From assembly GCA_965649825.1 (NCBI GenBank), contig OZ287694.1, positions 1,301,197 through 1,365,196 on the forward strand: a stretch of 64,000 bases of DNA, written 5' to 3'. A program made the position numbers and the translations under genes. The stretch comes from Penicillus capitatus. Its lineage: Eukaryota; Plantae; Chlorophyta. Position 1 is the first letter of the stretch. Each line of letters begins with the position of its first letter. The notes under the pieces were generated by a model that was given only the letters and a program-made list of their open reading frames with translations, had not been told where the DNA came from and did not search any database. Positions 4,859 through 56,193 of this stretch are shown one piece after another.

Positions 4859-7800
4859 TCAGGAGGATTGGCTGTTTGGCTTTTCGCCGAGATTTGTTAT
4901 CTCTTTCCTCAACTCCGCCACTTCTCTGTGGGTCATGCTTATCTGTTCGATTAGCCTCTCTTCATTCTTCTCTAGTTCAGACCGAAACTTCTTCGCCACT
5001 TCAAGAATCTTTCCCTCCCACGAATCGACCCTCTCGCTGTCGATGGGCTCAACTGGTACTAGGATGTGGAAGCATTTCTTTTGTGGCTTGACGAGAAGGT
5101 CAGATGCATGACGCATGATCACAGGATGTTGCGGCACTGGATCAGGAAGCTTCGATCTCCACGTGGTTTTGCGACAGGCCTTCCTGTGAGCAGAGACATC
5201 ATTCTGCCGAGACATAGAGCGATAGATATGGCCTACCAGATTTTTCCTGGGATTCCGTTCCATCCGTTACCGACCACAATCAGCTTCGCTCGGCATTTAA
5301 TGATCTCTGCTCTCTCGATGAACTTGATTTTGTCGTACGTGTCTCCCAGGATGGCGACTAGCAAACTCATCATGACAATTCCACAGACGAACAGAAATGT
5401 ATTGAAAAACAGTGAACGGAAGACGTGATAGAAACTGTTAGAATCTTCAAGGATCTAAAATGAACAATGGAAAAGCGATCAGACAATAGACGCCTCACCT
5501 CCGGATCGAATTGGCCTAGGGATGCGTGGAAGAGTGTCTCAAAGGACTTGAAGAAAGAACTGAAGTAACTCTTGTCATCGACTTTGAAAAAGTCAGAGAA
5601 CAGGATCAGAAATGAAATTCCGAATCCGACAATCGTCAATAATGCTAACAAGGTGAAGGGAATGATATCGAGGAAGACTTGCCGTATCATAGACACCATA
5701 GGGCCTGTCGCACTCAGTGGCTGCAGATAGAGCACGATCTGAAGGACGACGGTCAGTATGTATCAGAAGGTAGTGTCGTTTATGCTCACTGAAATCCAGC
5801 ATGACATGCATGCCAATGTAGCAAGGATTGGATCCCACGCTAGCGAATAACGTCTTCTCGAAATCATCAATGGCAATAAAAAGAACGGCTCTATAAAGAA
5901 CGAGAGAATCCTACAGGGCACACCTGAGTTTGGACTTCGAAAGTTTGAGAAATCTGCAACCTTATCTGTGGAATAACACCAAAGATGTTCAAATAGAAAA
6001 TGATACAAACACAGATAATGGCAAAACATCGTGTCTCTCGGGAAACTTTTTTGGATGCAGTGTGACATTCACTGCCATTTTCGCCGATGATTTCACAATC
6101 CATATGTCCGGGTGGATATGCATCTTCGACAAGCACTTCTACCACACAGACAGAGAACAGAATGGTGGCGATCACGTGCAGCACTGCGCTAGTCAAAAAC
6201 GCGTTCCTCAAAGAGGAATGCCACCTCCATTGGACCAATGCCTTGACAAAGGTGGATCCAAAGATCTCCACCGAAACTCCCTTCTGCATCAGATTTGCCA
6301 AGAAACATCCCTTTCCACGATAAACGATGTCTTCCAGACAGAAGAACTTCGAAACCGCCATGATCTGCACCTCTTCTTCCCCTTTTCGGACGCTCTTCTT
6401 CAGAGCCTTACAGTGGCTTAGCCAGAGCGACTTGACCTCTTCACTGTTCGTTTCCGTCCAATCATCCATGGGATCCGTGACCATGGCAACAGGTTTCTCT
6501 TTCCAATTCTTTAACAGGCTCGCAGGGACTGGGAATCTTCCATAGTCGTAGAGGAGTTTGTCTTCAACGAGATAGTCACGTAAAAGCTGAGGAAAGACCT
6601 CCGACAGCTTGTCTGTATGGACAGACAGAATTGCTGCTGTCTCGCTCACAGTCGTGCGCTTCTCCGCGAGCACCTCCATCACAAATGCAGCAACCTCCTT
6701 TGATTTGTGGACGATGGACCATCCCAAGAGGTCGCCGTCTTCCCAGCAAAGGGTAAGGGACTTGCCTTCTTCGGCTGCAAGGTCCAGCAGCAGCTTCGCA
6801 CAGTCGAATTTCTTGTGTATTACGACGTGATGGAAGAGATTCTTCCTTCCTTCTCGGCCGTATCCGAGCACAGAACAGCCGTGTTCAGAAATGAGCCTGC
6901 TTCGACGACCGTTTGATTCTAGGCAGACAACAAGGGAGAGAGATTCTGACCTTTTTACGGTGTCGGCATCGATTTCGATTCCGAGCAAATCAATCAAGGC
7001 GGCATCCGGGACTGAATGCTGCAGGTCGAGCAGAAAACGCATGCAGACAATCGACAAACGATCGATCTCGGACAGCACGTCTCGATCCCGTCGACTCTCC
7101 AGGTTAGCGCGGAACTGAGTGTTGAGTTCGAGGATCTGCTCAGGCGATGAGCCGGACGTGTCGTGCAGTTCCTTGGCTGGTGTCTCTAAAACGTGACAAT
7201 GAATCTCCGCCAGTGTCCTCGACTGAACTTACGGGAGATGTCGTAAATGACGAGGCGATCACTCGCACCGAAGCCGACGATGGCCCTCGTCTGGTCTCGA
7301 TTCATCCACAGAATCGCTTCGATGTCCAGTCTCAGATGACGCGGAACGTTGGACATGTACTCGGCTGTCATGTCTTCTCTCGAGGAGTTCAGCCGGAAGG
7401 ACACGGGTTTCTTCTTCAGAGGATCCAGCCCTACTGTGAGTGTTGTGCTATCCGTTGACAGGTGGATCGGAAAAGCTTCGATCAAAGACTCTACAAAGTA
7501 TTCGACGCCACAGGGATAGTGTAGATGGCCTCTGTTGACAGTGCGAAAGCCATGTTTCAAGTCGAGCACAGCGAACTCGCCATCCTCGAACACGACGATG
7601 GCCTTAGCGCCATCCGCCGTCGCTTTCATTCCCTTCAGCGGCAGACCAATGCTCGATTCGATCCAATGTGTGACAAGATCTTCTGGACGCTCGAATCGCA
7701 CTCTTGCAATCAGGATGCCGTCGTGCTGGGCACTTGCGAATGCAAACTCCGTCTGACCGTTAGCCGAGCAGAAGATTCCACAACTGGCGTCATAAGATGA

Positions 7801-9821
7801 TCTTGGAGGTGCCACTTCTGCAGTGGTCACCATTCTCCACTGAGTGTCGGCAGAAAAACTCTCAAAGTCTTGTATCTCTTTCGTCCGATAGATGCAAATC
7901 TTGCAACGTCCCTCCCGCAAAACAACAGCTACGGATTGTCTGTCTGGACTGAGAATCACGTGTGTGACATTCGATCCTTCGTAATCGCTGAGAATGCTGC
8001 GATGGCCAGTAAAAACACGCGCTTCAGCGAGAGGGGCAACTTCGGCCGTTATCTGTCTCTTCAGTGCGAAGCCTTCGGCCATCAACTGTCCAAACGCGAC
8101 GCTGTCGTACTCCTCCATACGCCACAGGGCTGACAGCATCGCTTCAGTGGTTTCTTCTGCGCATTCGCGACCGCTTTGGAACTCGATTGGCGACGCCACT
8201 CGGAAGACCTCGATGGCTGTCCCGTTGTCCACAGCTACGAACTGACCCGTCGGATCGAACTCGGCCTTCGCCACTCGGATTCTGTCTTGAAAGGACAGAG
8301 GCACTCTGCAGATCATTCTTCCGTCTCTGAGATCGTGAACGACACCATGCCTTCCATCCGCTTCGCACACGAACATTTTCTGCTCGTCTCGTGCGATGGC
8401 CACGTTTCCACTGTCGAGAAAACGAGCTACTAATGTCGACGCAATCGAGAACCATGGCATCTGCGTCTCCATCTGCGTCTCCAATTGGAACTCGATTGTC
8501 TCGTTTTTCAGATCCATGCAAAAGACTGTTGCTGTCTCTCCGCGGTTCCTGCCGTAGAACAGTAGCATCTTGGCCGAATGCGGCACATCGTTGTCCGAGA
8601 ACAAATGGGATCCACTCGTAAACAGCATCCGAGCATCGATCAGAATGCCACCGACCAGTGCATCGTATTCCTCCAGGGCTATCGAGATCGCGGGATCCTT
8701 CGTCTTCGCGCTGTCGTCGGTTGAGACCGCCTGTTCTGGGGTTGAACTTAATTCACTTGCGGTTCTATAGATGTAGACTCGATGCGTTGCCTCTTTCACA
8801 TTCGACCCCACGCCGTCCCATGTGAGCACAAAAGTCCCATCTCTGTCCATTCTGCCGCTGCTTCCGTCGAGAGAGCTCACACGCCAGTCGGATCTTTGGC
8901 GACGGATCTTGCGGAAGAGAACAATACAAGGCTCCTGCCCGGATGGCAGTCTTCGGTTTCCGACGACAAGGAGAGAATCGTTCCCGAAATCGGCATATGA
9001 ATACGTGAAGTCCGATCCGAAATACTCTGCAAAGGGCAGAGCCTCCCACACGCGCTCCTCGTCCGAAAGCACGGAGAGCACCAGCCCTTGTTCAGGCATT
9101 TCGGCCAGGTGAGCAAACGTCCTTCGCCTGTCGTCGTCGGAAACAAGAGCGACTTTCCTCGCATTCGACAGGTCCCAGTCATCAGAGAACACAGGATTGG
9201 CCCATCGCTCCGATTCTCGTAGAACAAAGAAGCGATTCAACTCGCCGTTCAGCCCGATGCGGAAGACAGACATCGACAGATCTTCAAGGAAGACAATAAA
9301 CCGCGAGGAGCTGTCAGCGCAGAAGCTGATGTTGATAACTCCCTGTCCTCTGGACACCATCCGGTTACACAGCTGAGAGAAACGCGTCGTTTCCCACACG
9401 CTAGACAGCGTACGTCAGGCTCGCGATTTCTTGCTGAAGACGACGCACCTTAGGCATCTGCCGCTGCAGACCATGCATCGCTTTGCGTCGCTCGAGAAGA
9501 CAATGAAGGAAGAATCCCCGCCGTCTGAGAGACGACTGACGTCTAGATGAATCAGAGCAACGCGTTTCCCGCAGTCATTCTCCACTCGAGAACACGTCTG
9601 ATTACTTCCGCTCGACTCGCCTGCGACATTGGACAAGTGTCGATTCTTCCAGAAGATGGACAGTGTTTCTGAAAGGCTGACGTCCCACCTTCGTGGCAGT
9701 CGACGGAGGTAAAGGTTTGCTTTCCTGCGTTTGTTTGGGTTGCCGCCAGAACAGGTTGACGCTTTCGAGCAAGATGTCTGTTCCGCTTTGAGACATCGAC
9801 AAGTTGGACGTTGCGCGACAT
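4859..9821 (-). CDS. WD40-like beta-propeller + ankyrin-like + TRP-type cation channel fusion, copy A1 (multi-exon, ~5 kb)
   Basis: Propeller-type repeats (KAEFDPTGQFVAVD, ILSPDRQSVAVV, MKATADGAKAIVV). The propeller joins the channel half via a ~47-nt GTAAG..TAG intron. TRP motifs GPMVSMIRQVFLD, FETLFHASLGQFD and FLVAILGDTYDK are present, with a C-terminal coiled coil. The start codon is inferred from the three-copy conserved MSRNVQL. Confidence 0.85.
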
Positions 9822-10464: not shown

Positions 10465-12642
10465 ATGGATAGCTCGGCATCGGACCTACCGTCGACGGAA
10501 GCCGTTGTGCCGGAGTCAACCACGAACAGCACAGAGCAGTTTGCGCATCGCCGTTCGCAGAGACCGCTCGTGTAACTGTGGCGCGTAGGTTAATTCCGAC
10601 GCACGAGCCGCAAATCGTCGACGCAGGGACGGCGTCAAGGAGGCCTTTGATCTTCGACGCGATTCTAAGGGGACTGTCCAGATTTGTGAGATGGATCTTT
10701 CCATGCGGCGATGAGCTTGATACTCCCACAAACCTCACGCAGCAAGAAAATGAGCTCAGGCAGGCCATCGAGGAATCGGAGAGTGCGACCAAGGCCGCCT
10801 TGGAGAACTTGCTGAGAAGGAACTCGACCTTCAAGCACACCAGCAGCGTTCTGAGCTGGAATCTTCTGGCACTCGTCCACAAACACCCGACGCTCATCGG
10901 CGCGTTCTTGGCGAGCGACAAACTCTCCTTCGAGTACGGAGAGTTCTCTGTCCCCGTCTCCCTGTTCCGAGACGCAGACGGACAGCCGATCGCAATGATG
11001 GCAGACGAGGAGCCAAGCGGCTGGGAGACGACAGACAGCGAGACAGCGAAGGCGTTCTGGATAGCAAAGTGCTCTGAGCATGAGAAAGCCCTGAAAGACA
11101 CAACGGGACCGCAGATCACAGTTGTTGCAAAGTTCGTCCGCCTCGACCAGAGTTTCACCAGACTCGCCCGACGCAAGAATGAAGGCGCTGTCTTTGGCAT
11201 CAACGCGGACGTGGTCTCGGTGCACTGCTCGAGGACGAACCTCCTGACGCTCCTCGCCACTGCCGATCTTCCGGTGGAGATCTTCAACTCTGAATCCCTG
11301 AAAAGCCTTGTCGCGTGGCGCTTCTACTCTCTCCGGAAGAGGTTCTGGTTCGTGTGCCTGTGGTATGTGTCCAAAGCAGTGATCTTCTCCGTCTTCGCAG
11401 CAGAGTACTGCCGCCTGTGGCGCGCGTCTTTGCTCCCGGGACGGATGTACCGGCTGTCGCTTTTTGTGGCAGCAGCGATGCCTGTGTGGACGACGTTTCG
11501 CTCCAGAATTCATGTCGTGAGGTAACAGCATCAGGCACAGATCTCGATCAACTTTGAGGACGCCATTCCGTTGCAGTAACATGATATTCGCGCCGCTGTT
11601 CGTCTATGTCGTCATCATGAATCGCTGCGATGAGCTCTCCGTTTTTCTGACTTCCATTCTCTGTATCATCCGATGGTTGCTGGTAGGTGCTTCGGCCGTG
11701 TCTCGACGGCTTCGTGGTTAGGAATCTAATGAGTGCGGTACTTACTGTGCCTAGGTCGTCGAGTGCCTTCGTCCTCTGGATCGCATAGGGCCCTTCATCT
11801 CGATGGTTCGTTACTCGCTCTTTGATACGCTGCCATTCATCTTTTTGGGAACTGTGGTCTTGTTCGGGTTCTCTCTCGCATTCACCGTTCTGTCGAAAGG
11901 CGGATACGTTAACTGTGATGGGTCCGAGTGTGAGAAGGAAGAAGAGTTTGCCACCATCCCGAACGCTTTCCAGACACTGTTTTACGCTTGTCTAGGAAAT
12001 ATCGAAGCAGAGGTGAGTCTGTGCCTGTCCTTGCTAAGTGAGCCTACCCCGTGTGCATTGCACCGCAGGTGTTTCAGTTTCAGGGCGGCTTCCTCTCGAT
12101 CATGAGATCCATTCTGTTCGACGCCTTCGTCTTTGTCGGCGGAATCGTCCTCCTGAGCTTACTGGTCGCCATCTTGTCCGACACGTATGACAGAGTCAAG
12201 CTCAAAGAGAAGGCCGAGCTGACGAAGTGTCGTGCGCTGATGGCTGGGTGGCTATTGTTCACGCGTTCCATCCCAGCCGGTGACAAGTGGGTCACATCCT
12301 CCGCTTCGTTCTCTTCGGTCACTGTCTTTCAGGAACACCGGCTTCTGGCTGTCCAAGTGGCGCTGGCTGTTCAGCCGCTTCTTCTATGCGTTCCGTTTTT
12401 TTCTGCCACCGGTCCCGTCAGCGAGCAACAAGAAGTACTTCCACTATCTAGTCCCGAAAGACGCACCGAGCGACGACGAGGACAAACAATGGAAAGGGAG
12501 GATCCTGGAAGTCAAAAACTATATGAAAGAGTGGTGGGAGAAGTACGAAGACCGACTGGGGAATCTCGAGAAAAAGATGGACCTATTGCTCCAAAAACTG
12601 GAATCGTTCAAACTATCCCGAGCGAGCTCTTCAAGCTACTAA
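10465..12642 (+). CDS. Short TRP-type cation channel lacking the WD40 domain, copy B1
   Basis: MDSSAS...Q|LIPTHEPQIV..., GPFISMVRYSLFD, FQTLFYACLGNIE, LLVAILSDTYDRVKLKEKAELTKCRALM, KKYFHYLVP. Confidence 0.85.
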
Positions 12643-12835
12643 CGGCACGCATGACGCCGTTCTGCTTCGTTTCATTATTCTTCCCCTATCTTGTTGTTTA
12701 TTGTTTATTATAGAAAACGGACAACCGTGCAATGGGATGTTTACAGGACCGATGTTTAGTGAGCTTTATTCACTTTGTTTTCGATAGGGCAGACACATGG
12801 GTTTCGATGTAGAAGGCTGTATATGATTAAGATTC

Positions 12836-17471: not shown

Positions 17472-19661
17472 ATGAATATCAACCCTCCATATGTGGTGCT
17501 CGACGATGCGCACGCACCTGGAGAAACACGTGCAATTCTTGACGCCATTGCTAGTGGCCAACTCAGTCGAGCCGAGCACTTATTCAGTTATGCGCAAGAA
17601 AACGGAATTCCGGTGGAGGTTTCATTGGATGGTGCCGACATACTCCAATGCGCCATTGAAGAATCAGAAGAGGCAACGTCGATGATTTTGGAGAGACTTC
17701 TGAGCGGATGCTCGACACTTGCAGACACTTGCCGTGTTCTGAGCTACAATCTGCCACAGATGATTCAGAAGTACCCTAGACTCATGAAGGAGTACTTGGC
17801 GATGGACAGATTCGCCGTCGAATACGGGAGGTTCTCACTACCGAGTTCTTTATTTCGAGAGACCAGCGGACAACCGATAGCTATGATGACAGATGAAGAA
17901 CTCCTCAACTGGAGAGCGCCAGGAAACGTGGCTGCGAAGAACCTTTGGATTAGGACCTGTCCGAAATGTCTCGAAGCCATTGCCTGCAAGAAAAAGAGAA
18001 GACAAATCACAGTCGTCGCCAAACTCCTTTGCTTCGATCAGAAATTCAGTCGCCAGAAAAGGGATGGCTTGGTTTTTGGAGTCAACGCAGACGCTGTCTC
18101 TCTGCGTTGCCGAAGCATGAACTTTCTGATGCTCCTCGCGAAGGCCAATCTGCCTTTGGAGATCTTCAATTCTGAATCGCTAAAGGCTCTTACCGAATGG
18201 CGATTTCGTGACTTTCGCAGAAGATCCTGGTTTGTTGGCATCTGGCATCTGGCATCTGGCAAGAGCACTGATCTTCTCCTTCTTCGCAACGACATACTCT
18301 CTTGACGGGGGAGCGATGAGCAAGAGTGGGCGAACGATATCGCTGACACTGCTCATCGTCTCGTCCTTACCCCCTGCGTTGCCCATCTGGCCCAGACTTT
18401 CCACAATAAAGTAGGACTTCATACACCTCTACTCTTCACGGACATGATAACAGAAGTTTTCAGTTTTCTAGCGGCTGCTTTGCTTTCGATACATGTTGCC
18501 TACAAGGGCCGCCATGATCCTTACTCCATCTTTCTAACCTCTGTCACATGTCTGACCCGCTGGCTCTTGGTACATTCATAGGCACTCTTGTTGCTATTCA
18601 AGCGCATTTTTGGGTTGTTTAGGTTGTTCAATGCCTTCGGCATGTCGATCGCATCGGTCCATTTATCTCGATGGTCCGCTACTCGCTGATCGATATAGTG
18701 CCCTTTCTACTCCTGGGCTTAATGGTGATGTTCGGCGTTTCCCTCGCCTTCACCGTTCTGTTCAACAGCAGTGTTGCAGAGGAAGGCCATCAGTACTTCC
18801 CTTCTATTGTGAATTCTCTCCAGACGCTGTTTTACGCCTGCTTGGGCAATTTTGACGAAGAGGTTAACTTACTGACGGCTGTGGCAATCTTGTTGCATCC
18901 TATAACGTGTTACGTTTGTAGGTCTGGCGAATCTCTGGCGGTTTTCTCTCTGTGTGGAGAGCCATTTTGTTCAATGTCTTTCTCTTTGTTGGTGGGATTG
19001 TCCTCATGAGCCTGTTGGTTGCCATCTTGTCCGACACATACGATAGAGTCAAACTCAAAGAGAAGGCCGAGCTGACGAAGTGTCGTGCGCTGATGGCAGG
19101 CGCATTATCATTCACACGTTCTACCGGCACACGGATCGCAACCAGGTGGGGCGTTCACTTCCTCTTGCCTCAAGCTGACTGTGCTCTGAAAGGAAAGTGG
19201 GATTTTGGCAGACAAAGCTTTATTGGCTTATGGGGCATCTTTTGTTTCTTCGCAAGTGGCTCCTTCCTTCCGTCCCGGAATCCATTAATAAGAAGTACTT
19301 TCATTATCTAGTTCCAGAGGAAGTCTTGAGCGATGATGATGACCGATGGGAAGGCAGAGTTCTGGCCTTCGACAAGAGCCTAAGAAAAGAATCTAAGAGA
19401 CAAGAAAAGAGACTCAAAGAGCAGACGCGAACGATGCTATATGAATTCGCCAATTTGAGACAACGGTGCAACGAAAGCGCCGCACAGGATATGGCTGCTG
19501 CTTCGATGACGAAGTGCGAGTCACGTCGACGTCGCTCTGGCCAAGAAGAGTCCTGCGTCGCCGAGTGTTCGACCTCCAATCCACGCACGGATCTGGATGC
19601 TCGGATGGAGAGACTAGAAAACACTTTGGAACATGTGTTGGAGCAACTAGGCGATTCTTGA
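17472..19661 (+). pseudogene. TRP-type channel subtype C, frameshifted by an extra 7-bp unit
   Basis: Homologous to TRP-B (EYGRFSLPSSLFR, IFNSESLK, FYACLGNFDEE, AILSDTYDRVK). (TCTGGCA)x3 at 18241-18261, where two units would keep the frame GIWHLARAL. Confidence 0.75.
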
Positions 19662-19734: not shown

Positions 19735-20065
19735 ATTGTCTGCCATCGTTGCGATCGGTTGTCCGTTGTCATGTCAATGGTAAAACGTTGTTAAGGACTC
19801 GTTTCTAGGTGTCGACACGCGTTAACGATGTTTCTGCGACGCGCTACGAAGCACAATTAGAAAACGATCTCGTCTCGAGCGCCTTTGTAAATGTATGCCG
19901 TCCCATCGTCGGCATATAAAATATCACAACACCATCTGCTTCTCGGTACGGGGAGACGACGACGGAGAACCTTCCGTATTCGAGGGAGATTTTGTCGGTC
20001 GCCAAATACTCACTGATGAGCTTCGGGATACTTGTGGACGAGTCCCGGAAGATTCGAGCTCAAGA
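19735..20065 (-). pseudogene. Internal remnant of a TRP-B gene (former head-to-head partner of WD40-TRP copy A2)
   Basis: Matches ~41985-42150 (CTGATGAGCTTCGGG..CTTGTGGACGAGTCCCGGAAGATTCGAGCTCA). It is interrupted by a 165-bp insert and truncated at the TIR element. Confidence 0.8.
19767..19931. mobile_element. Solo-LTR-like 165-bp insertion
   Basis: Termini are TGT...ACA, flanked by CCGT/CCAT (4-bp TSD with one mismatch). Removing it restores the TRP-B sequence GTCCGT|CTGC. Confidence 0.55.
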
Positions 20066-20067
20066 TA

Positions 20068-20856
20068 TCTGCTTAATCAGGCCAACCACGTCAAAACACA
20101 GACATGCCTCCAAATGCCACCAGATGCTGCACATTCCGAGAAATCCACTGCTATTAGAGATCCACTTTCTCTTTCAAACTAAACCGTTCCTTTAATCGAA
20201 ATTGCTACATTCGTGGACATTAGATCCTTTACTTGTTGACAAAAGGGCATTCGCTCTTGGTTCTTGGCAAGGTAGACCAACATTTCTTCTAAGGTGAAGA
20301 CTGATGTTAGATTCGTCCCTGTCGACAATGTGTTTGTTCTCTTGAATGAACTAGAAATGCGCTTCATGTATGTCTTCCTCGAGAGTTCAGAATTGTCGGG
20401 ATTTATCGTGGCAGTTAACGGAGTGGTCTTCTTAACGCTGAGAAGCCTGCCCTCCAACACATTATCAATGGCTGTCGTCGATACTATCAAGGCGAATTCA
20501 GTGTTTAATCTCTTCGCCATCATCATCCTCAATGCCGTGTGCAACGTTCTTCGATCCAATCAATTGGATTGCCAGCATAAACATGACGGGGATACGCCAA
20601 ACACTGGCGCGACGCGAACGCGCCGACGCGTGTACAAAGTCGGAGGAGACGGTGCTGAGTCGATGCAAAGACTGATTACATGGTGAGCCCAGTCAGCTTT
20701 ATGGCCCTGGCGCCCGCGGACCGCTGTCATGTCAAGCAGCGGACAGCCTGTCCGGTCCGCGGGGCCGTAACCGTTTGCGCGTACCCGTCAAAACACCATG
20801 CAGCTTTCAGTACCATACCCACCTCTGGGTTCTGGGCTGAATACTGATTAAGCAGT
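20068..20856 (-). mobile_element. Non-autonomous DNA-transposon-like element with 12-bp TIRs and a degenerate SWIM-like ORF
   Basis: CTGCTTAATCAG (20069-20080) and CTGATTAAGCAG (20844-20855) are exact inverted repeats, with TA dinucleotides one base outside each. The left TIR begins where TRP-B homology stops. The minus strand encodes ...SIKGTV*FERESGSLIAVDFSECAASGGIWRHVCVL, resembling the SWIM CxAGxxGxCxH motif. Confidence 0.5.
20713..20763. other. GC-rich T/Y-shaped nested inverted repeat (three-way junction)
   Basis: CCCGCGGACC (20713-22) pairs with GGTCCGCGGG (20754-63). It encloses abutting hairpins GCTG/CAGC and GGACA/TGTCC with no unpaired junction bases. Confidence 0.7.
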
Positions 20857-40150: not shown

Positions 40151-42533
40151 TCAGCGGCACAAAGAGCTCGCTCGGGATGACTCGGACGGTTCCAGCCTCT
40201 GCAGCACTCGATCGAGCTTGTCCTCGAGTCTCCCCATGCGATCTTCGACGGCCGACATCCGATCAGCCACTGAGGGATCCGCAAAATTCGAATCCTCTAG
40301 CAGCGATCGGCGGTGAGTCAAATCGATGTTCGCCTGGATCGCGGCGAACCTCTCATCGCACTGCTCTTTGAACTCCGAGAACTGGTGCAGTACTGTTCGC
40401 GTCTGCTCCGCCAGTTGCTCTTCGTGCTTCTTCGATTCCTTTCTCAGAGATCTGTTGATGGCCAGGACCCTCCCCTGCCACTGGTCGTCCTCGTCGTCGC
40501 TCGGTGCCTCCTCTGGGACCAGATAGTGGAAGTACTTCCCGTTGCTCGCTGGCGGGACTGGAGGGTTAAGGAAACGGAATGTGTGGAAGACACGACCGCG
40601 CAGCAAGTGCCACTTGGACAGCCAGAAGCCAGACTTCCTGAAAGACAGTGACGAAAGAGAACGAAGCGGTGGATGCGGCCCACTTGCTGCAGGTGCCGAT
40701 GGAACGCGTAAACGCCAGCCACCCAGCCATCAGTGCACGACACTTCGTCAGCTCGGCCTTCTCTTTGAGCTTGACTCTGTCATACGTATCGGATAAGATG
40801 GCGACCAACAAGCTAAGGAGGACGATTCCGCCGACGAAGACGAAGGCGTCGAACAGTATGGATCTCGTGATCGAGAGGAAGCCGCCCTTGAACTGAAACA
40901 CCTGCAGTGGAATATGCACACGAGCTGGGCTCACAGACAAGGACAGGCACAGACTCACCTCTCCTTCGATGTTTCCCAGGCAAGCGTAGAACAGTGTCTG
41001 GAAAGCGTTCGGCACAGAGGCGAATTCTCCTTCCTCCTCACACTTTGAACCAGAGACAGATTCTCCATCCTCTTCACACTTCGAGCCATCAGAGTTCACG
41101 GATCCGTGATTCGACAGAATGGTGAATGCGAGAGAGAATCCGAACAAGACCAGAGTTCCCAGAAAAATGAATGGCAGCGTATCAAAGAGCGAGTAGCGGA
41201 CCATCGAGATGAAGGGTCCGACGCGATCCAGAGGACGAAGGCACTGGACGACCTAGACACCATAAGAACCGCACTTGTTAGATTCCCAACCACAAAGCCG
41301 TCGAGACACGGCCCAAAACACCCACCAGCAACCAGCTCACGACGCAGTGGACGGACGTCAGGAAAAAGGAGATCTGGTAGCGACGATCCATAATCACATA
41401 GAATGTTAGTGGCACCAACGTCAGGGCACTGCAACAAGATTGGCGTGCTCAAGTCGACTGAGATCCCTGTCTGTTGTTACCTTACAACGTGAAGTCTGGA
41501 GCGAAACGTCGTCCACAGAGGCAACGCTGCTACCACGAAGAGCGTCACCTGATACATCCGTCTTAGCAACATAGACGCGCGCCACAGGCGGCCGTAGTCT
41601 GCTGCGAAGACGGAGAAGATCACTGCTTTGGACACGTACCACAGACACACGAACCAGAACCTCCTGCGTAGCGAGTGGAAGCGCCACTCGACAAGGCTCT
41701 TCAGGGATTCAGAGTTGAAGATCTCCACGGGGAGATCAGCCGTAGCGAGGAGCGTCAGGAAGTTCGTCCTCGAGCAGCGCATCGAGACCACGTCCGCGTT
41801 GATGCCGAAGACAGCGCCTTCCCTCGTGAGTCGGGTGAATCTCTGGTCGATGCAGACAAACTTGGCAACAGCTGTCATCTGCGGACCCGTTGTGTCTTCC
41901 AGGGCCTCTCTGATGTGCTTCGGGCAGTTCCTTGTCCAGAACGCCTTCGCTGTCTCGCTGCTTGTCGCTTCCCAGCCGCTTGGCTCCTCGTCAGCCATCA
42001 TTGCGATCGGCTGTCCGTCTGCGTCTCGGAACAGGGAGACGGGGACGAAGAATCGTCCGTACTCGAAGGAGAGTCTGTCGGCCGTCAAGTACTCGCTGAT
42101 GAGCTTCGGGTGCTTGTGGACGAGTCCCGGAAGATTCGAGCTCAGAACGCGGCTGGTGTCCTCGACGGTCGAGCATCTATCCAGCAGATACTCCACGACA
42201 GATTTGGTCGCCCTCTCTGACTCCTCGATGGCCTGCCTGAGGATATCATCCTCTCCCCACGTGAGGTTTATGGGAATGTCAAGTTTCTTGGCGTATGAGA
42301 AGATCCTTCGCACGGAGCTGGACTGCCTCCTTGCAATCGCGTCGAAGATCAAAGGTCTTCCCGATGCCGTCACTGCATCGACGATTCGAGGCCCGTGTGT
42401 CGAAATCAACCTACAACACAGTGAACACGAACGGTCTCTGCAGACGTCCTTGTGCAGACTGTTCAGTGCACTCCATAGTCCACTCCGGCTCAACGACTTC
42501 CGTTAAGGACGTCTCGGATGCCGAGCTGTCCAT
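40151..42533 (-). CDS. Short TRP-type channel, copy B2
   Basis: Paralog of B1: same first intron, GPFISMVRYSLFD, FYACLGNIEGE, AILSDTYDRVK. The C-terminal tail is longer and differs. Confidence 0.85.
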
Positions 42534-43383: not shown

Positions 43384-46300
43384 ATGTCGTGCAACGTCCA
43401 ACTTGTCGATGTCTCAAAGCGGAACAGGCATCTTGCTCGAAAGCACCAAGCTGTTCCGGCGGCAACCCAAACAAACGCAGGAAAGCAAACCTTTACCTCC
43501 GTCGACTGCCACGAAGGTGGGACGTCAGCTTTTCAGAAACACCGTCCGTCTTCTGAAAGAGTCGACACTTGTCCAATGCCGCAGGCGAGTCAAGTGGAAG
43601 CTATCGGCCTTGTTCACCAGAGGAGGATGACTGTGGGAAACGCGTTGCTCTGATTCAGTTAGACGTCAGTCGTCTCTCAGACGGCGTGGGTCCTTCCTTC
43701 ATTGCCTTCTCGAGCGACGCAAAGCGATGCATTGTCTGCAGCGGTGGATGCCTAAGGTGCGTCGTTTCCAGCAAGAAATCGAGAGCCTGACGTACGCTGT
43801 CTAGTGTGTGGGAAACGACGCGTTTCTCTCAGCTGTGTAATCGAATGGTGTCCAGAGGACAGGAAGTTGTCAACATCAGCTTCTGCGCTGACAGCTCGTC
43901 GCGGTTTATTGTCTTCTTTGCCGATCTGTCGATGTCTGTCTTCCGCATCGAGCTAAACGACGAGTGGAATCACTCTTTTGTTCTACGAGAATCAGAGCGC
44001 TGGGCCAATCCTGTGTTCTCTGATGACTGGGACCTGTCGAATGCGAGGAAAGTCGCTCTCGTTTCCGACGACGACATGCGAAGGACGTTTGATCACCTGG
44101 CCGAAATGCCTGAACAAGGGCTGGTGCTCTCCGTGCTTTCGGACGAGGAGCGCGCGTGGGAGGCTCTCCCCTTTGCAGAGTATTTCGGATCGGACTTTGC
44201 GTATTCCTATGCCGATTTCGGGAACGACTCTCGCCTCGTCTTCGGAAACCGAAGACTGCCATCCGGGAAGGAGCCTTGTATTGTTCTCTTCCACAGAATC
44301 CGTCGCCAAAGATCCGACTGGAATGTGAGCTCTCTCGACGGAAGCAGCGGCAGAATGGACAGAGATGGGACTTTTGTGCTCACATGGGACGGCGTGGGGT
44401 CGAATGTGAAAGAGGCAGCGCATCGAGTTTACATCTACAGGACTGCAAGTGATTCAACTTCAGATCCAGGACAGATGGTCTCAACCGGCGACTGCCCGAA
44501 GACGAAGGATCCTTTTATCTCGATTGTCCTGGAGAAACACGATGCATTGGTCGGTGGCATTCTGATCGATGCTCGGATGCTGTTTACGAGTGGATCCCGT
44601 CTGCTCTCGGACAACGATGTGCTGCATTCGGCCAAGATGCTACTTTTCTACGGCAGGAACCGCGGAGAGACAGCGACAGTCTTTTGCATGGATCTGAAAA
44701 ACGAGACAATCGAGTTCCAATTGGAGACGCAGATGCCATGGTTCTCGATCGCGTCGACATCAGTAGCTCGTTTTCTTGACAGTGGAAACGTCGCCATCAC
44801 ACAAGAAGAGCAGAAGATATTCGTCTGCGTTTCGGATGGAAGGCACGGAGTCGTCCATGATCTCAGAGACGGAAGAGTGATCTGCAGGGTGCTTCTGTCT
44901 TCTCAAGACAGAAACCGAGTGCTGAAGGTGGAGTTCGATCCGACGGGTCAGTTCGTAGCTGTGGACAACGGGACAGCCATCGAGGTCTTTCGAGTGGCGT
45001 CGCCAATCGAGCTCCGAGGCGGTCGCGAATGCGCAGAGGAAACCACTGAAGCGATACTGTCAGCCCTGCGGTGTGTGGAGGAGTACGACAGCGTCGCGTT
45101 TGGACAGTTGATGGCCGAAGGCTTCGCACTGAAGAGACAGATAACGACCGAAATGGCGCCTCTCGTTGAAGCACGTGTTTTTACTGGCCATCCCAGCATT
45201 CTCAGCGATTACGAAGGATCGAACGTCACACACGTGATTCTCAGTCCGGACAGACAATCCGTAGCTGTTGTTTTGCGGGAGGGACGTTGCAAGATTTGCA
45301 TCTATCGGACGAGAGGGATACAAGGCTTCGACGGTTTCTCCGACGACACTCAGTGGAGAATGGTGACCACTGCAGAAGTGACACCTCCAAGATCATCTTA
45401 CGACGCCAGCTTCGGGATCTTCTGCTCGGCTAACGGTCAGACGGAGTTTGCATTTGCAAGTCCCCAGCACGACGGCATCCTGATTGCAAGAGTGCGATTC
45501 GAGCGTCCAGAAGATCTTGTCACGCATTGGATCGAATCGAGCATTGGCTTGCCGCTGAAGGGAATGAAAGCGACGGCGGATGGCGCTAAGGCCATCGTCG
45601 TGTTCGAGGATGGAGAGTTCGCTGTGCTCGACTTGAAAGATGGCTTTCGCACTGTCAACAGAGGCCATCTGCACTATCCCTGTGGCATCGAATACTTCGT
45701 GGAGTCGTTGATCGAAGCCTTTCCGATCCACCTGTCGACGGACAGCGCAACACTGACGGTGGGGTTGGATCCTCTGAAGAAGAAACCCGTGTCCTTCCGG
45801 CTGAACTCCTCAAGAGAAGACATGACAGCCGAGTACATGTCCAACGTGCCGCGTCTTCTGAGACTGGACGTCGAAGCGATTCTGTGGATGAATCGAGAAC
45901 AGACGAGGGCCATCGTCGGCTTCGGTGCGAGTGACCGCCTCGTCATCTACGACATCTCTCGTAAGTTCAATCGAGGACACTGACAGAGATTCATTGTCAC
46001 GTTTAGAGACTCCGGCCAAGGAACTGCACGACACGTCTGACTCATCATCTGAGCAGATCCTCGAACTCAACACTCAGTTCCGCGCTCGCCTGGAGAGTCG
46101 ACGGGATAGAGACGTGCTGTCAGAGACCAATCGTCTGTCGATGGTCTGCATGCATTTTCTGCTCGACCTGCAGCATTCAGTCCCGGATGGCGCCTTGATC
46201 GATCTGCTCGGAATCGAGATCGATGCTGACACCGTGAAAAGGTCAGAATCTCTCCCTTGTTGTCTGCCTAGAATCAAACAGTCGTCGAAGCAGGCTCATT

Positions 46301-48354
46301 TCTGAACACGGCTGTTCTGTGCTCGGACAAGGCCGAGAGGAAAGGAAGAATCTTTTCCATCACGCCGCGATAAGCAAGAAATTCGACTGTGCGGATCTGC
46401 TGCTGGACCTTGCAGCCGAAGAAGGCAAGTCCCTTAGCCTTTGTTGGGAAGACGGTGACCTCTTGGGATGGTCCATCGTCCACAAGTCAAAGGAGGTTGC
46501 TGCATTTGTGATGGAGGTGCTCGCGGAGAAGCGCACGACTGTGAGCGAGACAGCAGCAATTCTGTCTGTCCATACAGACAAGCTGTCGGAGGTCTTTCCT
46601 CAGCTTTTACGTGACTATCTCGTCGAAGACAAACTCATCTACGAGTACGGAAGGTTCCCTGTCCCTGCGAGCTTGTTAAAGAATTGGAAAGAGAAACCTG
46701 TTGCCATGGTCACGGATCCCATGGATGATTGGACGGCGACGAACAGTGAAGAGGTCAAGTCGCTCTGGCTGAGCCATTGCAAGGCTCTGAAGAAGAGCGT
46801 CCGAAAAGGGGAAGAAGAGGTGCAGATCATGGCGATTTCGAAGTTCTTCTGCCTGGAAGACATCGTTTATCGTGGAAAGGGATGTTTCTTGGCAAATCTG
46901 ATGAAGAAGGGAGTTTCGGTGGAGATCTTTGGATCCACCTTCGTCAAGTCATTGGTTCAATGGAGGTGGCATTCCTCATTGAGGAACGCGTTTTTGATTA
47001 GCGCAATGCTGCACGTGATCGCCACCATTCTGTTTTCTGTTTGTGTGGTAGAAGTGCTTGTTTATCATGGGCATGGATGCGACCTGTGGAAGCTCGAAGA
47101 TGATCCTATAAAACATTATAAACCGTACGAATGTTCTTCTGGAGTGATACGACGATATCTTGCGATTATCTGTGTTTTCATCATTTTCTACTTGGGCATC
47201 TTTGGTGTTATTCCACAAATAAGGTCACGCGTCTTTTTGATTCTTTGAGATCCAGACTCAGGTGTGCCCTGTAGAATTCTCTCGTTCTTTATAGAGCCGT
47301 TAGTGCTCTTCGAAATTATGGTTTGGGGAGATCAGTATCCGGTAAAGTCGCAATCAGCCCTTGCTGCATTGGCGTGTATGTCATGTTGGATTTCAGTAAG
47401 CATAAACGACACTCTCTTCTGATACATATCGACAGTCTTCTGTCAGATTGTGCTCTATCTGCAGCCACTGAGTGCGACAGGCCCTCTGGTGTCTATGATA
47501 CGGCAAGTCTTCCTCGATATCATGCCCTTCGCCTTGTTGGCAGCATTGTCAATCGTGGGATTCGGACTCACATTCATGATCCTGTTCTCTAAAACCTTCG
47601 AAGTGAATGACAAGAGTTACTTTAGCACTGTCTTCAAATCCTTTGAGACGCTTTTCCATGCATCCTTAGGCCAATTCGATCCGGAGGTGAGCAATCAATT
47701 GTCTGATCGCTTTTCCATTGTTTGTTTTAGATTCTTGAAGATGATGACGATTTCTCTCACGTCTTCCGTTCTCTGTTCTTCGGTGCATTTCTATTCGTCT
47801 GTGGAATTGTCATGTTGAGTTTCCTGGTCGCCATCCTGGGAGACACGTACGACAAAATCAAGTTCATCGAGAGGGCAGAGATCATCAAATGCCGAGCGAA
47901 GCTGATTGTGGTCGGAAACGGATGGAACGGAATCCCAGGAAAAATCTGGTAGAGCATATCCATTTTGTCTCAGGAGATTATTGTCTCTGTACACAGGAAG
48001 GCCTGTCTGAGAATGATGTGGAGATCGAAGTCTCCAGATCCAGTCCCACAACATCCTGTGAACATGCGTCATGCTTCTGACGTTCTTGTCAAGCCACGAA
48101 GGAAATGCTTCCACATCTTAGTACCAGTTGAACCCATCGACAGCGAGACGGTCGTTTCGTGGCAGGGAAAGATTCTTGAAGTGGTGAAGAAGTTTCGGTC
48201 TGAACTGAAAAAGAATGAAGAGAGGCTAATCGAACAGATGAGCACGACCCAGAGAGAAGTGGCGGAACAGATGAGCACGACCCAGAGAGAAGTGGCGGAG
48301 TTGAGGAAAGAGATAACAAAGCTCAACGAGAAACTGAGCAGCCAAACCTCCTGA
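43384..48354 (+). CDS. WD40-TRP channel fusion, copy A3
   Basis: Same exon structure as A1 and A2, with a 33-nt in-frame duplication in the C-terminal coiled coil. Confidence 0.87.
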
Positions 48355-50178: not shown

Positions 50179-50231
50179 CGTGTTCTTACTTTTGAAGACC
50201 GATCGACGTGACAGTCCGAGCAGCAGAGAAG

Positions 50232-51087: not shown

Positions 51088-52147
<1,060 letters not shown>

Positions 52148-53862: not shown

Positions 53863-56193
53863 TTAGGCTGCTAAACTGTCCACCAATGCTTGTGTGCGTC
53901 GACTAGCGGTCCGGGTCTTCTTTTTCAGTTCTCTCTTGAGGCTCTTTTCGATCTCACGGATGTTTTCCTCCCACAAATCGCTTTGCTCTCTTCCTGTTCT
54001 TTCGACGGGGACCAAATAGTGAAAGTACTTGCCACTGGATCGCTGACGGATCTTGTTTCTGCAAAGACAGGATCTGAAGAATGGCGCTATCGATGACATC
54101 CGTCTGAAGATTGCTCTCCATCCAAAGCAGCCACTGTCCAAAAGAAACGATGTGAACACAGCGGAGGCATTTGGCGATGCTAACCGGTGCTCGTCTTCTA
54201 ACGTGATGTTGCGATGAATGATGGAAGACACAACATCGCCTGCTATAGCGGCACGGTGCCTGGCCGCCCTAGCCGTCTTCATGAGTTTGGAACGATATCT
54301 GGTATCAATCAGAATGATAATCCAAAGGTTAATCAAAAGAACTGCGCCGAGAAACGCAAGGAAATTATAGGCAAACGCTTTCCATACGCTAACCCACCCT
54401 GCCGTCGAACTGATTTCCTTCATGGCAAGCCACATGTTATCGAGGAAAGAGAACTTCACCAAATAGTCACCGTCACCGAACAAAAGGCGGGACAATAGAC
54501 TAAAGCCCCCACGGCAAGAATAAAGAGCGTATTCGCAATCTCTGCCATCTTTGTATTTGCGTAAATCATAAAAGCTGTTGACCTCGAAGCCCATCGAAAA
54601 CATAATAATTGCGGCAATGCAATAAAAGACAAGGTCTATGACGAAAATCAACACGAATGACAAGGAAAATCTATTAAGTGCGCAAGTGCAACAATCGACA
54701 ACGATTGCGACGAAATAGAACAAACGATCGAGTCTTGACACGAATGGTCCATGAAGTCCATGGTACAGACACAATCTCATCTCCTACAAATAAAACACAC
54801 GAACATTTCGTGCATACCAGGTGACACGGCGTGCAATGATGCTCACTTGAAGAGACCAAAGGATGGACTCGAAGGACACCACGATGGCGGAGAATCCCGT
54901 GAAGTCTTTCAGTCTCACAAAATCTGCCATGCGATACAACAGAATTGCACCGGTTGGAACGCTAAACATTCAGCACCACAACTATTATTCACGGTTCATC
55001 TTGTGGTGTGTTGTCTTACTAGATCCATAAGCGTCTAATCTTGAGTTCATATATTCGAAAAGTCGCGAAAGAGAACAAATAGCTCGTGGCAAACATCCTC
55101 GCTGAGTGCGACGGATCTTCTTCGTCTTGCAATGCTTTGGGACTCCAAGCAATACCGAAAAGGAGCACCCCGGCAAGGACCTCTAATATGATGAACAATC
55201 CGAAGCGCCCGCGGAATGCGCCGAACACCCAGTCGGCGATAGCTTGCAAGGCTTCGGAGTTGACGACTCTCATCGGAATACGTCGTTGGCTTAGAAGTAA
55301 GCCAAGGAAATGATATCGGACGCGGCGCTCATTTGGACCAACAGTGTCATCAGACCAGCTTTGACGGACAGAGTGTTGATTGACACAGAGGAACTTGGCA
55401 ACGGCTTCGACCTGAACACCCGACGTCTCATCAAACGCCGTTCGATGTTCTTCACAGTTCTTTGACCAGAACTCCTTCACTGCTGCACTGTCCAGCGACG
55501 TCCAGTCCGTTAGTTTTTCGTCCGTTGTCATTCCGACCAGACCTTCAGGATTGTCGAACAGAGTAGCAGGCACCATCACTCTGCCATACTCGAAAGAGAA
55601 GGCGTCTCTCTTCAAGTAATCGAGCATGAGATTGGGGAATGTCTGTGTCAGTGGGAGCAAGTAGTTCGTCAGAATGTTGCAGGATTCGTCCACTGTGAAC
55701 TGTTTAGCCGCAACGCGATCGAGAACGAACTTTGCGACAGCCACAGAGTCTTGTGCTGTCCCATGGTCTAATGTGACACACTCTCCAGTGTCGATCATGA
55801 CGAACAGTTTGTACTTTCTTTTAAATTCCAACAAAATCTCTGCGCAATCGAAAAGGCAGTTCAGGATAGCGTCACAGAGAAGATCGATTCCTTCGTCTGT
55901 CCGGAAATTAATCACCTCGTACCCATACTTAAAGGTCAGCCTGCACACAAAGATACCAACACTTGTGTCACGGCTTCTGTATCTCACTCTTTCGTTGCCT
56001 CCTCGAGCCACGATCGGACAGAGATCCGTTCGTTTTCACCGATTGCAATAATACTAAGTTGAACGTCATCATGCTCCTCTGAAACAACAACAGAGTGAGG
56101 ATGCGTTTCAGAGTCGGTCGCGCTATAGGGACCTGTGAGTGGGCGGTATAGTGAACTCTCTCTTCTTCTGGGTGTTCGACTGCTCGAACTCAT
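53863..56193 (-). CDS. TRP-like channel subtype D, copy D2 (apparently intact)
   Basis: Spliced MSSSSRTP...KE|LTFKYGY...WIY|VPTGAIL...SLQ|EMRLCLY...HGPFVSRL, AYNFLAFLGAVLLINLWII, ARAARHRA, KYFHYLVP. Pore loop SRLLFGDGDY differs from the LG(Q/N)(F/I) motif of subtypes A-C. Confidence 0.75.

Follow-up and report, generated by a model that had tools for sequence, protein, structure and literature searches.

Nine TRP-like loci in 52 kb

The window, that is, the whole 64,000-nucleotide stretch of DNA analysed here, contains exactly nine TRP-like loci between positions 4859 and 56193, as located by tblastn with the spliced locus-A protein and pieces of the S- and D-type proteins as queries. This count, together with direct translation, bears out the original prediction of nine such loci in a 52-kb cluster, as well as its sorting into three propeller-plus-channel genes (P-type), two intact short genes, one frameshifted gene and one remnant (S-type), and two divergent genes (D-type). 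The loci, with three smaller features within them, are as follows.

4859..9360, (-) strand: P-type gene A, product of 1400 aa, based on gene model, Pfam and PDB matches and dN/dS; exons 9360-7233, 7185-6951, 6896-5961, 5910-5790, 5738-5499, 5454-5237, 5183-4859; order of parts: ~710-aa beta-propeller-like region, ~80-aa linker, ~230-aa cytosolic helical region, 6-TM TRP-like channel, C-terminal helix
5796..6154, (-) strand: hypervariable block of A, aa 1036-1138, covering the S1-S2 loop, S2, S3, the S3-S4 loop and the 50-nt intron 3
7186..7232, (-) strand: intron 1 of A, 47 nt, donor GTAAGT, acceptor TTTTAG, at the propeller/channel junction
~10587..12642, (+) strand: S-type gene S1, no propeller, frames intact; span without the short 5' exon
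17472..19661, (+) strand: S-type gene S2, frameshifted in this haplotype
18236..18242, (+) strand: 7-bp tandem duplication TGGCATC inside helix S1 of gene S2, which causes the frameshift
19913..20078, (-) strand: S-type remnant, part of the N-terminal cytosolic region, ~55 codons over two frames
21561..26042, (+) strand: P-type gene B, 1393 aa, stop-free, dN/dS 0.33-0.40 against A and C; exons 21561-23676, 23723-23957, 24010-24936, 24991-25111, 25163-25402, 25447-25664, 25718-26042
27548..29875, (-) strand: D-type gene D1
40151..42533, (-) strand: S-type gene S3, with a 25-aa first exon (MDSSASE...), a phase-2 intron and the channel body; splice sites are candidates
43845..48354, (+) strand: P-type gene C, 1405 aa, based on gene model and dN/dS; exons 43845-45960, 46007-46241, 46294-47223, 47275-47395, 47447-47686, 47731-47948, 47997-48354
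53863..56193, (-) strand: D-type gene D2, a mosaic relative to D1

The outer limits of the cluster as first predicted are the stop codon of A (4859) and the start codon of D2 (56193). Its quoted pore motifs can all be read in the translations: SLGQFD is common to A, B and C, CLGNIE to S1 and S3, and CLGNFD, FFGDSG and LFGDGD belong to S2, D1 and D2, respectively.

P-, S- and D-type genes have a channel body in common, consisting of a cytosolic helical region, pre-S1 and six membrane helices with a pore loop, and ending with a post-S6 helix at the TRP-helix position followed by a C-terminal amphipathic helix. This body starts at a conserved phase-2 intron just ahead of the motif LIS(E/T)HG; upstream of the intron, P-type genes carry a ~710-aa beta-strand-rich region and a linker, and S- and D-type genes one or two short exons. 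In D1, two short 5' exons precede the shared cytosolic region, and a strongly divergent membrane domain lies between that region and the shared C-terminus. The remnant matches the N-terminal piece of S3 (63-68% identity, tblastn E = 1.5e-12). The window also holds a pair of mTERF genes, and adjoining DNA or a related contig has a chlorophyllase-family match and an F-box-type kelch match, all of them faint hints of an algal source. Neither Rfam families nor tRNA genes turned up in scans covering the whole window.

Splicing of the P-type genes

Each P-type gene is interrupted by six GT-AG introns of 44-54 nt, removal of which leaves uninterrupted coding sequences of 1400, 1393 and 1405 aa in A, B and C, with no stop or frame error in ~4.2 kb each. 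The propeller and channel halves had been predicted to be joined by conserved introns of ~46-54 nt; the joining holds, by way of these six introns and with the slightly wider length range. The product length of ~1,450 aa proposed at the same time does not: ~1400 aa are encoded from the first ATG conserved in relatives, and ~1450 would need putative upstream exons. Some 450 nt upstream of 9360 are conserved, and are a candidate for coding sequence (from ATG1, MSRNVQLVDV...) or 5'UTR. Three alternative models were discarded. An upstream start for A (MNSFF..., at 9927) is absent from B, C and L004, a locus from another metagenome. An apparent frameshift of B and C relative to A at a TC repeat proved to be a sixth intron, of 54 nt in A, 52 in B and C and 50 in L004, and B and C are therefore intact. 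A last intron of 38 nt with donor GTAACG was rejected because B and C read GAAACG there; the model adopted, of 48-55 nt (GTAG..CAG), is supported in four loci.

The 737-aa propeller ORF of A ends at an in-frame stop inside intron 1. B and C have a 46-nt version of this intron, A and L004 one of 47 nt, and its removal restores the frame in all four. L004, whose exon DNA is ~80% identical to that of A and whose propeller ORF product (P0004) is 72-73% identical, also carries an intact copy of the gene, with the same six introns (47/50/55/51/51/55 nt), splicing absorbing every difference in length. On contig L006, from a distant relative, a single ORF, matching residues 412-885 in the initial draft of the A model, runs through the propeller/channel junction, and three further diverged paralogues (L007, L008, L009), only 25-38% identical, keep the propeller and channel in that order. 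Both halves and the linker of the P-type genes have dN/dS values of 0.2-0.4 (0.19-0.40 for the linker), which denotes purifying selection. The shared introns with frame restored in L004, the single ORF of L006 and the selection acting on halves and linker alike establish, at the level of sequence, that the two halves form one spliced gene and that the fusion is real.

The halves might instead be separate genes, or the propeller be made alone by retention of intron 1, the fusion then being an artefact of read-through. Intron 1 does contain an in-frame stop and is the best conserved of the introns (A and L004 share 41 of its 47 bases; the other introns reach an identity of 69-78%), and an in-frame ATG (the M of ...SIVCMRF...) lies ~47 codons past the junction. 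However, purifying selection acts on those 47 codons when they are read in the spliced frame, the gap between the two ORFs is only 46-47 nt, and the donor and acceptor, together with a CTGAC motif that resembles a branch site and is visible in B and C, are conserved across the four loci; with the uninterrupted ORF of L006 and the order retained in the distant paralogues, these features make separate products very unlikely.

The channel half and the region ahead of it

The spliced channel half of A matches Pfam Ion_trans with E = 6e-8 (32.6 bits, cut-off 25) and PKD_channel above cut-off, and the spliced S3 model matches Ion_trans with E = 1.6e-13 (50.9 bits). Six membrane helices are apparent in the spliced models, with the pore loop between S5 and S6. 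The best match in phmmer searches of the PDB is Iav (2.8e-11), followed by TRPV6, TRPV3, TRPV5, Chlamydomonas TRP1, PKD2L1 and TRPC; the family profile places Chlamydomonas TRP1 (6pw4, 1e-13) ahead of TRPV5/6 (~2e-12), then TRPC4/5, NOMPC and TRPV1/4. All 60 PDB matches listed, with E down to 1e-13, are TRP channels or PKD2L1, and no entry named TRPW is among those listed for the family profile. The predicted TRP-like nature of the channel is supported, and the S4-S6 region, judged by these alignments, is homologous to the TRP type.

Chlamydomonas reinhardtii TRP1 ('TRP-like ion channel'), the best solved-structure match to the profile, aligns from S3 to the post-S6 helix, including the pore-loop LG motif and S6, but only through its membrane domain (chain residues 575-766) and with low overall identity; we know of no N-terminal propeller in this protein. 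Similarity to TRPV5/6, TRPV3 and Drosophila Inactive is significant from pre-S1 to the TRP-helix position, the TRPV5/6 alignment to the profile extending to the post-S6 helix and TLGDYN of Inactive aligning with the pore motif LGQFD. In alignments, the post-S6 segment DTYDKIKFIERAEIIKCRAKLIV falls on the TRP-helix region of Inactive and of Chlamydomonas TRP1, with the conserved TRP-box Trp replaced; this loss sets the family apart from animal TRPV channels, as does a shift of the acidic filter residue (LGQFD, LGNIE, FGDSG). Moreover, the N-terminus of TRPV channels is an ankyrin-repeat domain, whereas no Pfam Ank family matches A at E <= 1 and the ankyrin repeats of TRPV6 gave only non-significant alignments to the P-type protein in the PDB phmmer search. 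The C-terminal tail (...KILEVAKKFRSELEKNEERLIEQISMTHREVAELRKEITNL) has, by eye, a 3-4 hydrophobic spacing. D1 and D2 by themselves do not match Pfam Ion_trans, and the D-type membrane domain resembles nothing known; D1 has no Pfam or PDB match of its own, its membrane domain alone finding nothing meaningful in the PDB. What ties D1 to the other types is homology in the N-terminal region (E 1e-25 to 1e-41), in S6 and in the C-terminus. It may be that neither D1 nor D2 forms a functional channel.

The ~710-aa region had been labelled a WD40 propeller. No HMM recognises it as WD40: searches with WD40 and propeller models gave no significant match (best Pfam E 0.16-0.27 for A, 0.034 for relatives), and the best PDB profile match, at E = 0.036, is not significant, the weak profile matches being to WDR35/IFT121 and other WD40 proteins. 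Only nine relatives were found among 1.84 billion representative proteins. A link to protein P0012, whose repeats match ANAPC4_WD40, is significant (E = 2e-4 over 1.8 billion proteins), and hhalign of the propeller family against this WD40-like protein aligned one blade with 30% probability. An AlphaFold model built from 11 sequences (pLDDT 49.6; 33 with five near-identical sequences) consists of little but beta-strands, mostly grouped about four at a time, apart from a helical insert at 414-473. Of the 50 Foldseek matches listed for it, nearly all are proteins with WD40 propellers, in most cases two of them, at E values down to 2e-11 (about 1e-11 to 1e-8) and TM-scores of only 0.10-0.26. The region is probably a double beta-propeller, the low pLDDT and TM-scores making this fold probable rather than proven; what stands of the label is a beta-propeller-like fold at low confidence.

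WD40-TRP channels have been named TRPW in two preprints of June 2026, which report the architecture in chlorophytes, diatoms, ciliates, euglenids, choanoflagellates and filastereans (Coyle et al., bioRxiv 10.64898/2026.06.15.732144; companion 10.64898/2026.06.15.732245). TRPW1 of the choanoflagellate S. rosetta is lipid-gated and controls flagellar beating, its lipid agonist site lying between the S1-S4 bundle, the TRP helix and the S4-S5 linker, and Chlamydomonas TRP11 is another member (10.64898/2026.06.15.732144; 10.64898/2026.06.15.732245). The present genes resemble TRPW in their probable N-terminal propeller or propellers, predicted to be cytosolic, the helical region (helical or ankyrin in many TRPWs), the type-I-like TRP membrane domain and the post-S6 and C-terminal helices, and also in lineage-specific expansion, the presence of propeller-less members in the clade and, as in the preprints, propeller models of low confidence. 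They differ in that the P-type propeller region escapes WD40 HMMs and is long enough for two propellers, against a single 7-blade domain in TRPW1, and in that the paralogues lie in a single 52-kb cluster and vary mainly in the S1-S4 loops; by their architecture, the P-type genes are candidate members of the TRPW clade. Since TRPW has already been named, the P-type genes are not a new design: their predicted domain order makes them a further example of a described architecture rather than a new class of immune receptor.

The reading we favour, and consider probable, is of a cluster of TRP-superfamily cation-channel genes that has undergone segmental duplication and whose introns are very short, the P-type members having TRPW architecture. 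If they behave like known TRP and TRPW channels, their subunits would assemble as tetrameric, Ca2+-permeable, non-selective cation channels, the propeller serving on the cytosolic side as a protein-docking or regulatory platform and the S1-S4 domain sensing the stimulus that leads to gating.

Duplication, selection and possible specificity

The window includes three segmentally duplicated units, each with an MFS transporter gene and TRP genes. S1 and S3 are 79.6% identical in DNA and inverted in orientation. Gene conversion has been patchy, blocks of 98-100% identity adjoining blocks of ~70%; D2, for example, is 98-100% identical to D1 in its flanks and ~70% in the membrane domain. The TGGCATC duplication in S2 is missing from a 98%-identical alternative haplotig, where the ORF has 311 aa rather than 277; the null allele is still segregating, and the source organism is probably diploid. 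The units, the conversion, this allele and the remnant uphold the earlier view of a birth-and-death array.

Among A, B and C, dS is 0.15-0.19, overall dN/dS is 0.33-0.40, and the proteins are ~86-88% identical (from substitution counts). The propeller (dN/dS 0.29-0.42) has no low-identity window among the paralogues; such segments are confined to the S1-S4 hypervariable block and the C-terminal tail. Within the block DNA identity is 44-80%, against ~92-97% in adjoining segments, dN lies at 0.5-0.85, and the S3-S4 loop has a dN/dS above 1. The variable part of the P-type genes is the S1-S2 loop and the S3/S3-S4 region, not the propeller. In D-type membrane domains dN/dS is 0.5-0.9, locally 2.7.

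These patterns bear on the suggestion, made at the outset, of an analogy with Ca2+-channel immune receptors and HET-E/NWD proteins, whereby the P-type proteins would be intracellular immune sensors, the propeller binding a pathogen or non-self ligand and opening a Ca2+ channel, and the array the product of an arms race. Clustered recent duplicates, among them a null allele that still segregates and a remnant, dN/dS locally above 1 and haplotypes of differing structure would all suit such a history, and HET-E/NWD proteins and the Ca2+-permeable resistosomes of plants likewise belong to clustered, fast-changing families and couple a repeat module to an effector, a likeness in general idea only. 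But HET-E/NWD repeats are hypervariable, whereas here the propeller is the conserved part and the variable residues sit in membrane-domain loops; no NACHT, NB-ARC, TIR, HET or other death or immune domain is among the Pfam matches of the window proteins and spliced models; the P-type proteins have no nucleotide-binding oligomerisation domain, and their channel is predicted to be of the classical 6-TM tetramer type, not an oligomerised funnel as in resistosomes; and TRPW1, the sole characterised protein of this architecture, is a sensory channel. The analogy is not supported, and an immune role of this kind is very unlikely. That the array consists mostly of nonfunctional, decaying duplicates kept similar by gene conversion alone, as the lesion in S2, the remnant, the near-neutral D-type membrane domains and the long tracts of 98-100% identity might suggest, is very unlikely given that A, B and C are free of stops and frameshifts at their dS over ~4.2 kb each, that dN/dS is well under 1 in every domain but the loops, that the L004 copy is intact and that the other haplotype lacks the S2 lesion.

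On the reading of the cluster as duplicated TRPW-type and related channels, most of the difference between the paralogues falls in the S1-S2 and S3-S4 stretches, and they therefore probably sense different things. A bolder proposal, which we put forward tentatively and think rather less likely to be right than wrong, is that the S1-S4 sensor domain and not the propeller sets specificity, the cluster being a fast-evolving, polymorphic repertoire of ligand receptors. Patchy conversion would then homogenise the parts that lie in the cytosol or line the pore, and differences in the S1-S2 loop, in S3 and in the S3-S4 loop (in D1 and D2 across the whole membrane domain) would be preserved or actively widened; the ligands might be, for example, bacterial or algal lipids or self/non-self surface cues. 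If true, the cluster would be a natural library for mapping how the sensor domains of TRP channels gain new ligands.

The cluster provides an independent, genomically resolved case of the propeller-TRP (TRPW) architecture, and illustrates how such a family can evolve: the N-terminal module is swapped or lost at a conserved intron, whole units of MFS transporter gene and TRP genes duplicate, and gene conversion evens out all but the sensor loops. Being so similar overall and differing mainly in S1-S2 and S3-S4, the P-type paralogues amount to ready-made chimeras for the study of sensor-domain specificity in TRP channels.

Gene models of the channel cluster

The window, eukaryotic nuclear DNA of G+C ~51%, is part of ctg340529_34x (1.84 Mb, ENA assembly ERZ25074695), in reverse orientation. 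Its frames are interrupted by all three stop codons, hence the standard genetic code applies; the contig's gene calls come from a prokaryotic-style ORF caller, and for that reason the ORF track splits spliced genes. Tblastn searches, with the spliced locus-A model and pieces of the short and divergent types as queries, returned nine TRP-like loci, the number originally predicted: three propeller-plus-channel (P-type) genes, three short (S-type) genes, one remnant and two genes with divergent membrane domains (D-type). The predicted span proved exact, from the A stop codon (4859) to the D2 start codon (56193), and every pore motif quoted with it (SLGQFD, CLGNIE, CLGNFD, FFGDSG/LFGDGD) is present.

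4859-9360 (-), A, P-type gene
~10587-12642 (+), S1, short gene
17472-19661 (+), S2, short gene
19913-20078, remnant of ~55 codons
21561-26042 (+), B, P-type gene
27548-29875 (-), D1, D-type gene
40151-42533 (-), S3, short gene
43845-48354 (+), C, P-type gene
53863-56193 (-), D2, D-type gene

A, B and C each comprise seven exons joined by six GT-AG introns of 44-54 nt, several with a CTGAC-like branch motif, giving stop-free coding sequences of 1400, 1393 and 1405 aa. The intron at the propeller-channel junction opens with a GTAAGT donor one base past ...YDIS and closes with a TTTAG acceptor; B and C have 46 nt here where A has 47, a difference matched by the frame downstream. It is the best conserved P-type intron: 41 of 47 bases are the same in A and in L004, a related locus in assembly ERZ26696514 (other introns, 69-78%).

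7186-7232 (-), junction intron of A
23677-23722, junction intron of B
45961-46006, junction intron of C
12120-12166 of L004, junction intron of L004

L004 is ~80% identical to A in exon DNA and 72-73% in the propeller ORF product; its own product is 1425 aa long, its six introns (47, 50, 55, 51, 51 and 55 nt) are common to A, and all intron length differences from the window genes are absorbed by splicing. L006, a short contig of a more distantly related organism (Logan SRR20820735), holds a single unbroken ORF that aligns to residues 412-885 of the initial draft of protein A and extends from the latter half of the propeller region across the junction into the channel's cytosolic region, and in three paralogues 25-38% identical (L007, L008, L009) channel exons directly follow the propeller ORF. 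The linker, the ~80 codons that follow the junction, has a dN/dS of 0.19-0.40 when A, B and C are compared with each other and of 0.31 when they are set against L004. Taken together, the shared introns, restored frames, L006 ORF, exon order and linker constraint allow the predicted joining of propeller and channel into one gene by short introns to be taken as established on genomic and comparative grounds. The junction intron ends with an in-frame stop, so its retention would yield a stand-alone propeller protein; the tail of this intron-1-retained product, RKF(S/N)RGH..., is conserved.

A 2-bp difference between A and the other two P-type genes falls at a TC repeat; a frameshift there was considered and rejected, comparison with the related locus placing an intron at this point (A, 54 nt; B and C, 52 nt each; L004, 50 nt). 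In-frame repeats occur in gene A at ~8460-8470 (12 nt, ETQM twice, propeller region) and in gene C at ~48210-48245 (33 nt in tandem, QMSTTQREVAE twice, C-terminal helix), the latter resembled by an INATR(R/K)EV repeat at the L004 C-terminus.

Some 450 nt 5' of the P-type start codon are as conserved with L004 as is coding sequence, and include a near-invariant piece, CATGTCGCGCAACGTCCAACTTGTCGATGTCTCAAAGCGG, holding two ATGs, as well as a 48/45-nt intron-like element. This stretch could be additional 5' coding exons, uORFs or a regulatory leader; none of the gene models tried on it fits all four loci.

~9400-9850 (-), upstream of A
21100-21560 (+), upstream of B
43400-43845 (+), upstream of C
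~9530-9990 of L004, upstream of L004

Identity of the two halves

Unspliced channel ORF pieces gave no match in a Pfam search; the spliced channel half of A matches Ion_trans (E = 6e-8, 32.6 bits, cut-off 25) and also PKD_channel, and S3 matches Ion_trans at E = 1.6e-13. Among solved structures, single-sequence search placed Drosophila Inactive first (E = 2.8e-11), followed by TRPV6/3/5, Chlamydomonas TRP1, PKD2L1 and TRPC3/6, and a profile built from A, C, S3 and D1 retrieved Chlamydomonas TRP1 (1e-13), TRPV5/6 (~2e-12), then TRPC4/5, NOMPC and TRPV4/1, the TRPV5/6 alignment extending from pre-S1 through the helix after S6. That helix aligns with TRP helices, the conserved Trp being absent, and a Pfam scan of spliced A found no ankyrin repeats. 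At the level of sequence, the Ion_trans match and the primacy of TRP structures confirm the predicted TRP-like channel.

The N-terminal half has no significant sequence match in Pfam or PDB. Its family numbers four proteins in a 5.8-billion-protein collection, all from these metagenomes, and nine among 1.84 billion representatives searched at full HMMER sensitivity; repeats of the weakest of these nine, P0012, match Pfam ANAPC4_WD40 (E = 2.3e-12), hhalign of this protein aligning one blade only. An eleven-member profile found WD40/IFT121/WDR35 propellers and a 6-phosphogluconolactonase at E = 0.04-0.4 only. The AlphaFold2 model (11-sequence alignment; mean pLDDT 49.6, reaching 75-88 at residues ~580-710) is nearly all beta-strand, its strands falling mostly into groups of about four; residues 414-473 form a helical insert. 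Foldseek gave 1095 PDB matches at E <= 0.001, with TM-scores of 0.10-0.26 only; the best 50 are nearly all WD40 propeller proteins, mostly two-propeller, among them SSU-processome UTPs, Elp2, IFT-A and doublet-microtubule inner proteins. The modelled half is probably two highly diverged WD40-like beta-propellers: of the WD40 propeller originally predicted, the fold is made probable by Foldseek and the strand pattern, whereas assignment to the WD40 family was not demonstrated, no WD40 HMM match to this half being significant.

A phase-2 intron right before LIS(E/T)HG is common to S3, D1 and the P-type genes; 5' of it, the P-type genes have propeller and linker, S3 and D1 a short exon or a pair of them (25 aa in S3, ~49 aa in D1). 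In L009 an S-like pore (IGNIEAD) stands behind a propeller. The shared intron, alternative 5' modules and L009 pore suggest that the short types arose through loss or replacement of the N-terminal module.

Duplication history and neighbouring genes

Self-comparison reveals three copies of a unit—MFS transporter gene, S gene, P gene—that continues into housekeeping genes or a D gene.

2-9904, matching 53220-43302, inverted, 92%
9912-12559, matching 43099-40411, inverted, 80%
21018-26336, matching 43302-48646, direct, 91%
26545-31512, matching 52856-57813, direct, 85.5%

Overall, A, B and C differ pairwise by dS 0.15-0.19 with dN/dS 0.33-0.40; dN/dS is 0.32-0.42 in the propeller, mostly 0.1-0.4 from S4 through S6 (pore loop of B vs C, 0.62) and 0.00-0.13 in the helix after S6. 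Low identity is confined to three segments, namely aa 1036-1089 (S1-S2 loop), aa 1104-1138 (S3 with the S3-S4 loop) and the C-terminal tail; in the loop segments dN is 0.5-0.85 and dS is raised too, dN/dS exceeding 1 in the S3-S4 loop. D1 and D2 are 98-100% identical in their cytosolic N- and C-terminal regions and ~70% in the membrane domain, where dN/dS lies at 0.5-0.9 but reaches 2.7 in the S4-S5 stretch. A mosaic of this kind is consistent with gene conversion acting on the flanks, while the sensor or membrane region is kept or made to diverge.

A half-coverage contig, ctg314837_18x (18.4 kb), aligns to 6653-19354 at 98.05% identity, so the organism is probably a diploid, unless two close strains were sampled. 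Gene S2 carries a 7-bp tandem duplication in its S1 helix that is absent from the other haplotype, and is thus a segregating null allele. Duplicated units, conversion mosaic and segregating null together make birth-and-death evolution of the array, as first proposed, well supported by the genomic comparisons.

The neighbouring genes are as follows.

1316-2158 (+) / 51088-51729 (-) and 3028-3474 (+) / 49739-50185 (-), inverted two-copy segment beside A and C
12836-14272 (-), 15323-16666 (-) and 37816-39189 (+), MFS_1 transporter paralogues
30417-31397 (+) / 56984-58528 (+), coiled-coil paralogues beside D1 / D2
58789-59223 (+), kelch-repeat gene fragment with F-box-type kelch matches, near the mTERF pair
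61219-62247 (-) and 62256-63398 (+), mTERF genes, head to head, 8 bp apart

The three MFS_1 paralogues lie among the channel genes and were duplicated together with them; in L008 an MFS gene (9768-11324) also comes immediately after the diverged propeller-TRP paralogue, so the MFS-TRP linkage has been kept across old paralogous loci. The inverted segment holds a CCCH zinc-finger gene, adjoined by a RING finger-like ORF (by eye resembling RNF113/Cwc24), and an NSRP1_N-domain gene. If the order of C and D2 is mirrored here, a further D-type gene may sit just beyond the left window end. The main ORF of the coiled-coil paralogue is 326 aa beside D1 vs 514 aa beside D2, and the D1-side copy may be truncated or spliced differently. 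L004, L008 and L009 lie on ERZ26696514 ctg303802 (1.37 Mb) at ~607, ~754 and ~1066 kb, the related organism thus having at least three propeller-TRP genes over 460 kb, 25-72% identical to those of the window; a retroelement-like gag/aspartic-protease ORF neighbours L009. A related contig has a chlorophyllase-family match, which together with the mTERF pair and the kelch gene of the window is a weak hint of a photosynthetic lineage.

Comparison with TRPW channels and possible function

Two June 2026 preprints describe TRPW, TRP channels that carry at least one N-terminal cytosolic WD40 propeller, a TRP helix, a C-terminal coiled coil and, in many cases, an ankyrin region; choanoflagellates have an expanded set, the architecture has also been reported from filastereans, euglenids, ciliates, diatoms and chlorophytes, and the clade includes propeller-less members (bioRxiv 10.64898/2026.06.15.732144; 10.64898/2026.06.15.732245). 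TRPW1 is Ca2+-permeable, has a bacterial fatty acid as its gating ligand and governs the flagellar beat (10.64898/2026.06.15.732144; 10.64898/2026.06.15.732245). A, B and C, with their probable propellers, have the same architecture and are candidate members of the clade, and the propeller-less TRPW members are paralleled by the S and D types. The headline feature of the P-type genes, the propeller-TRP fusion, is thus already known.

The analogy with immune receptors, part of the original prediction, has no specific support: Pfam searches show no NLR-type domain, the propeller is conserved rather than variable, and the single relative studied so far works as a sensory channel. Most likely, we infer, these genes would provide Ca2+/cation entry gated by a stimulus, with the cytosolic propeller serving for docking or regulation and the paralogues being distinguished by their S1-S4 sensor regions; the D-type genes may have taken on a new function or be in decay.
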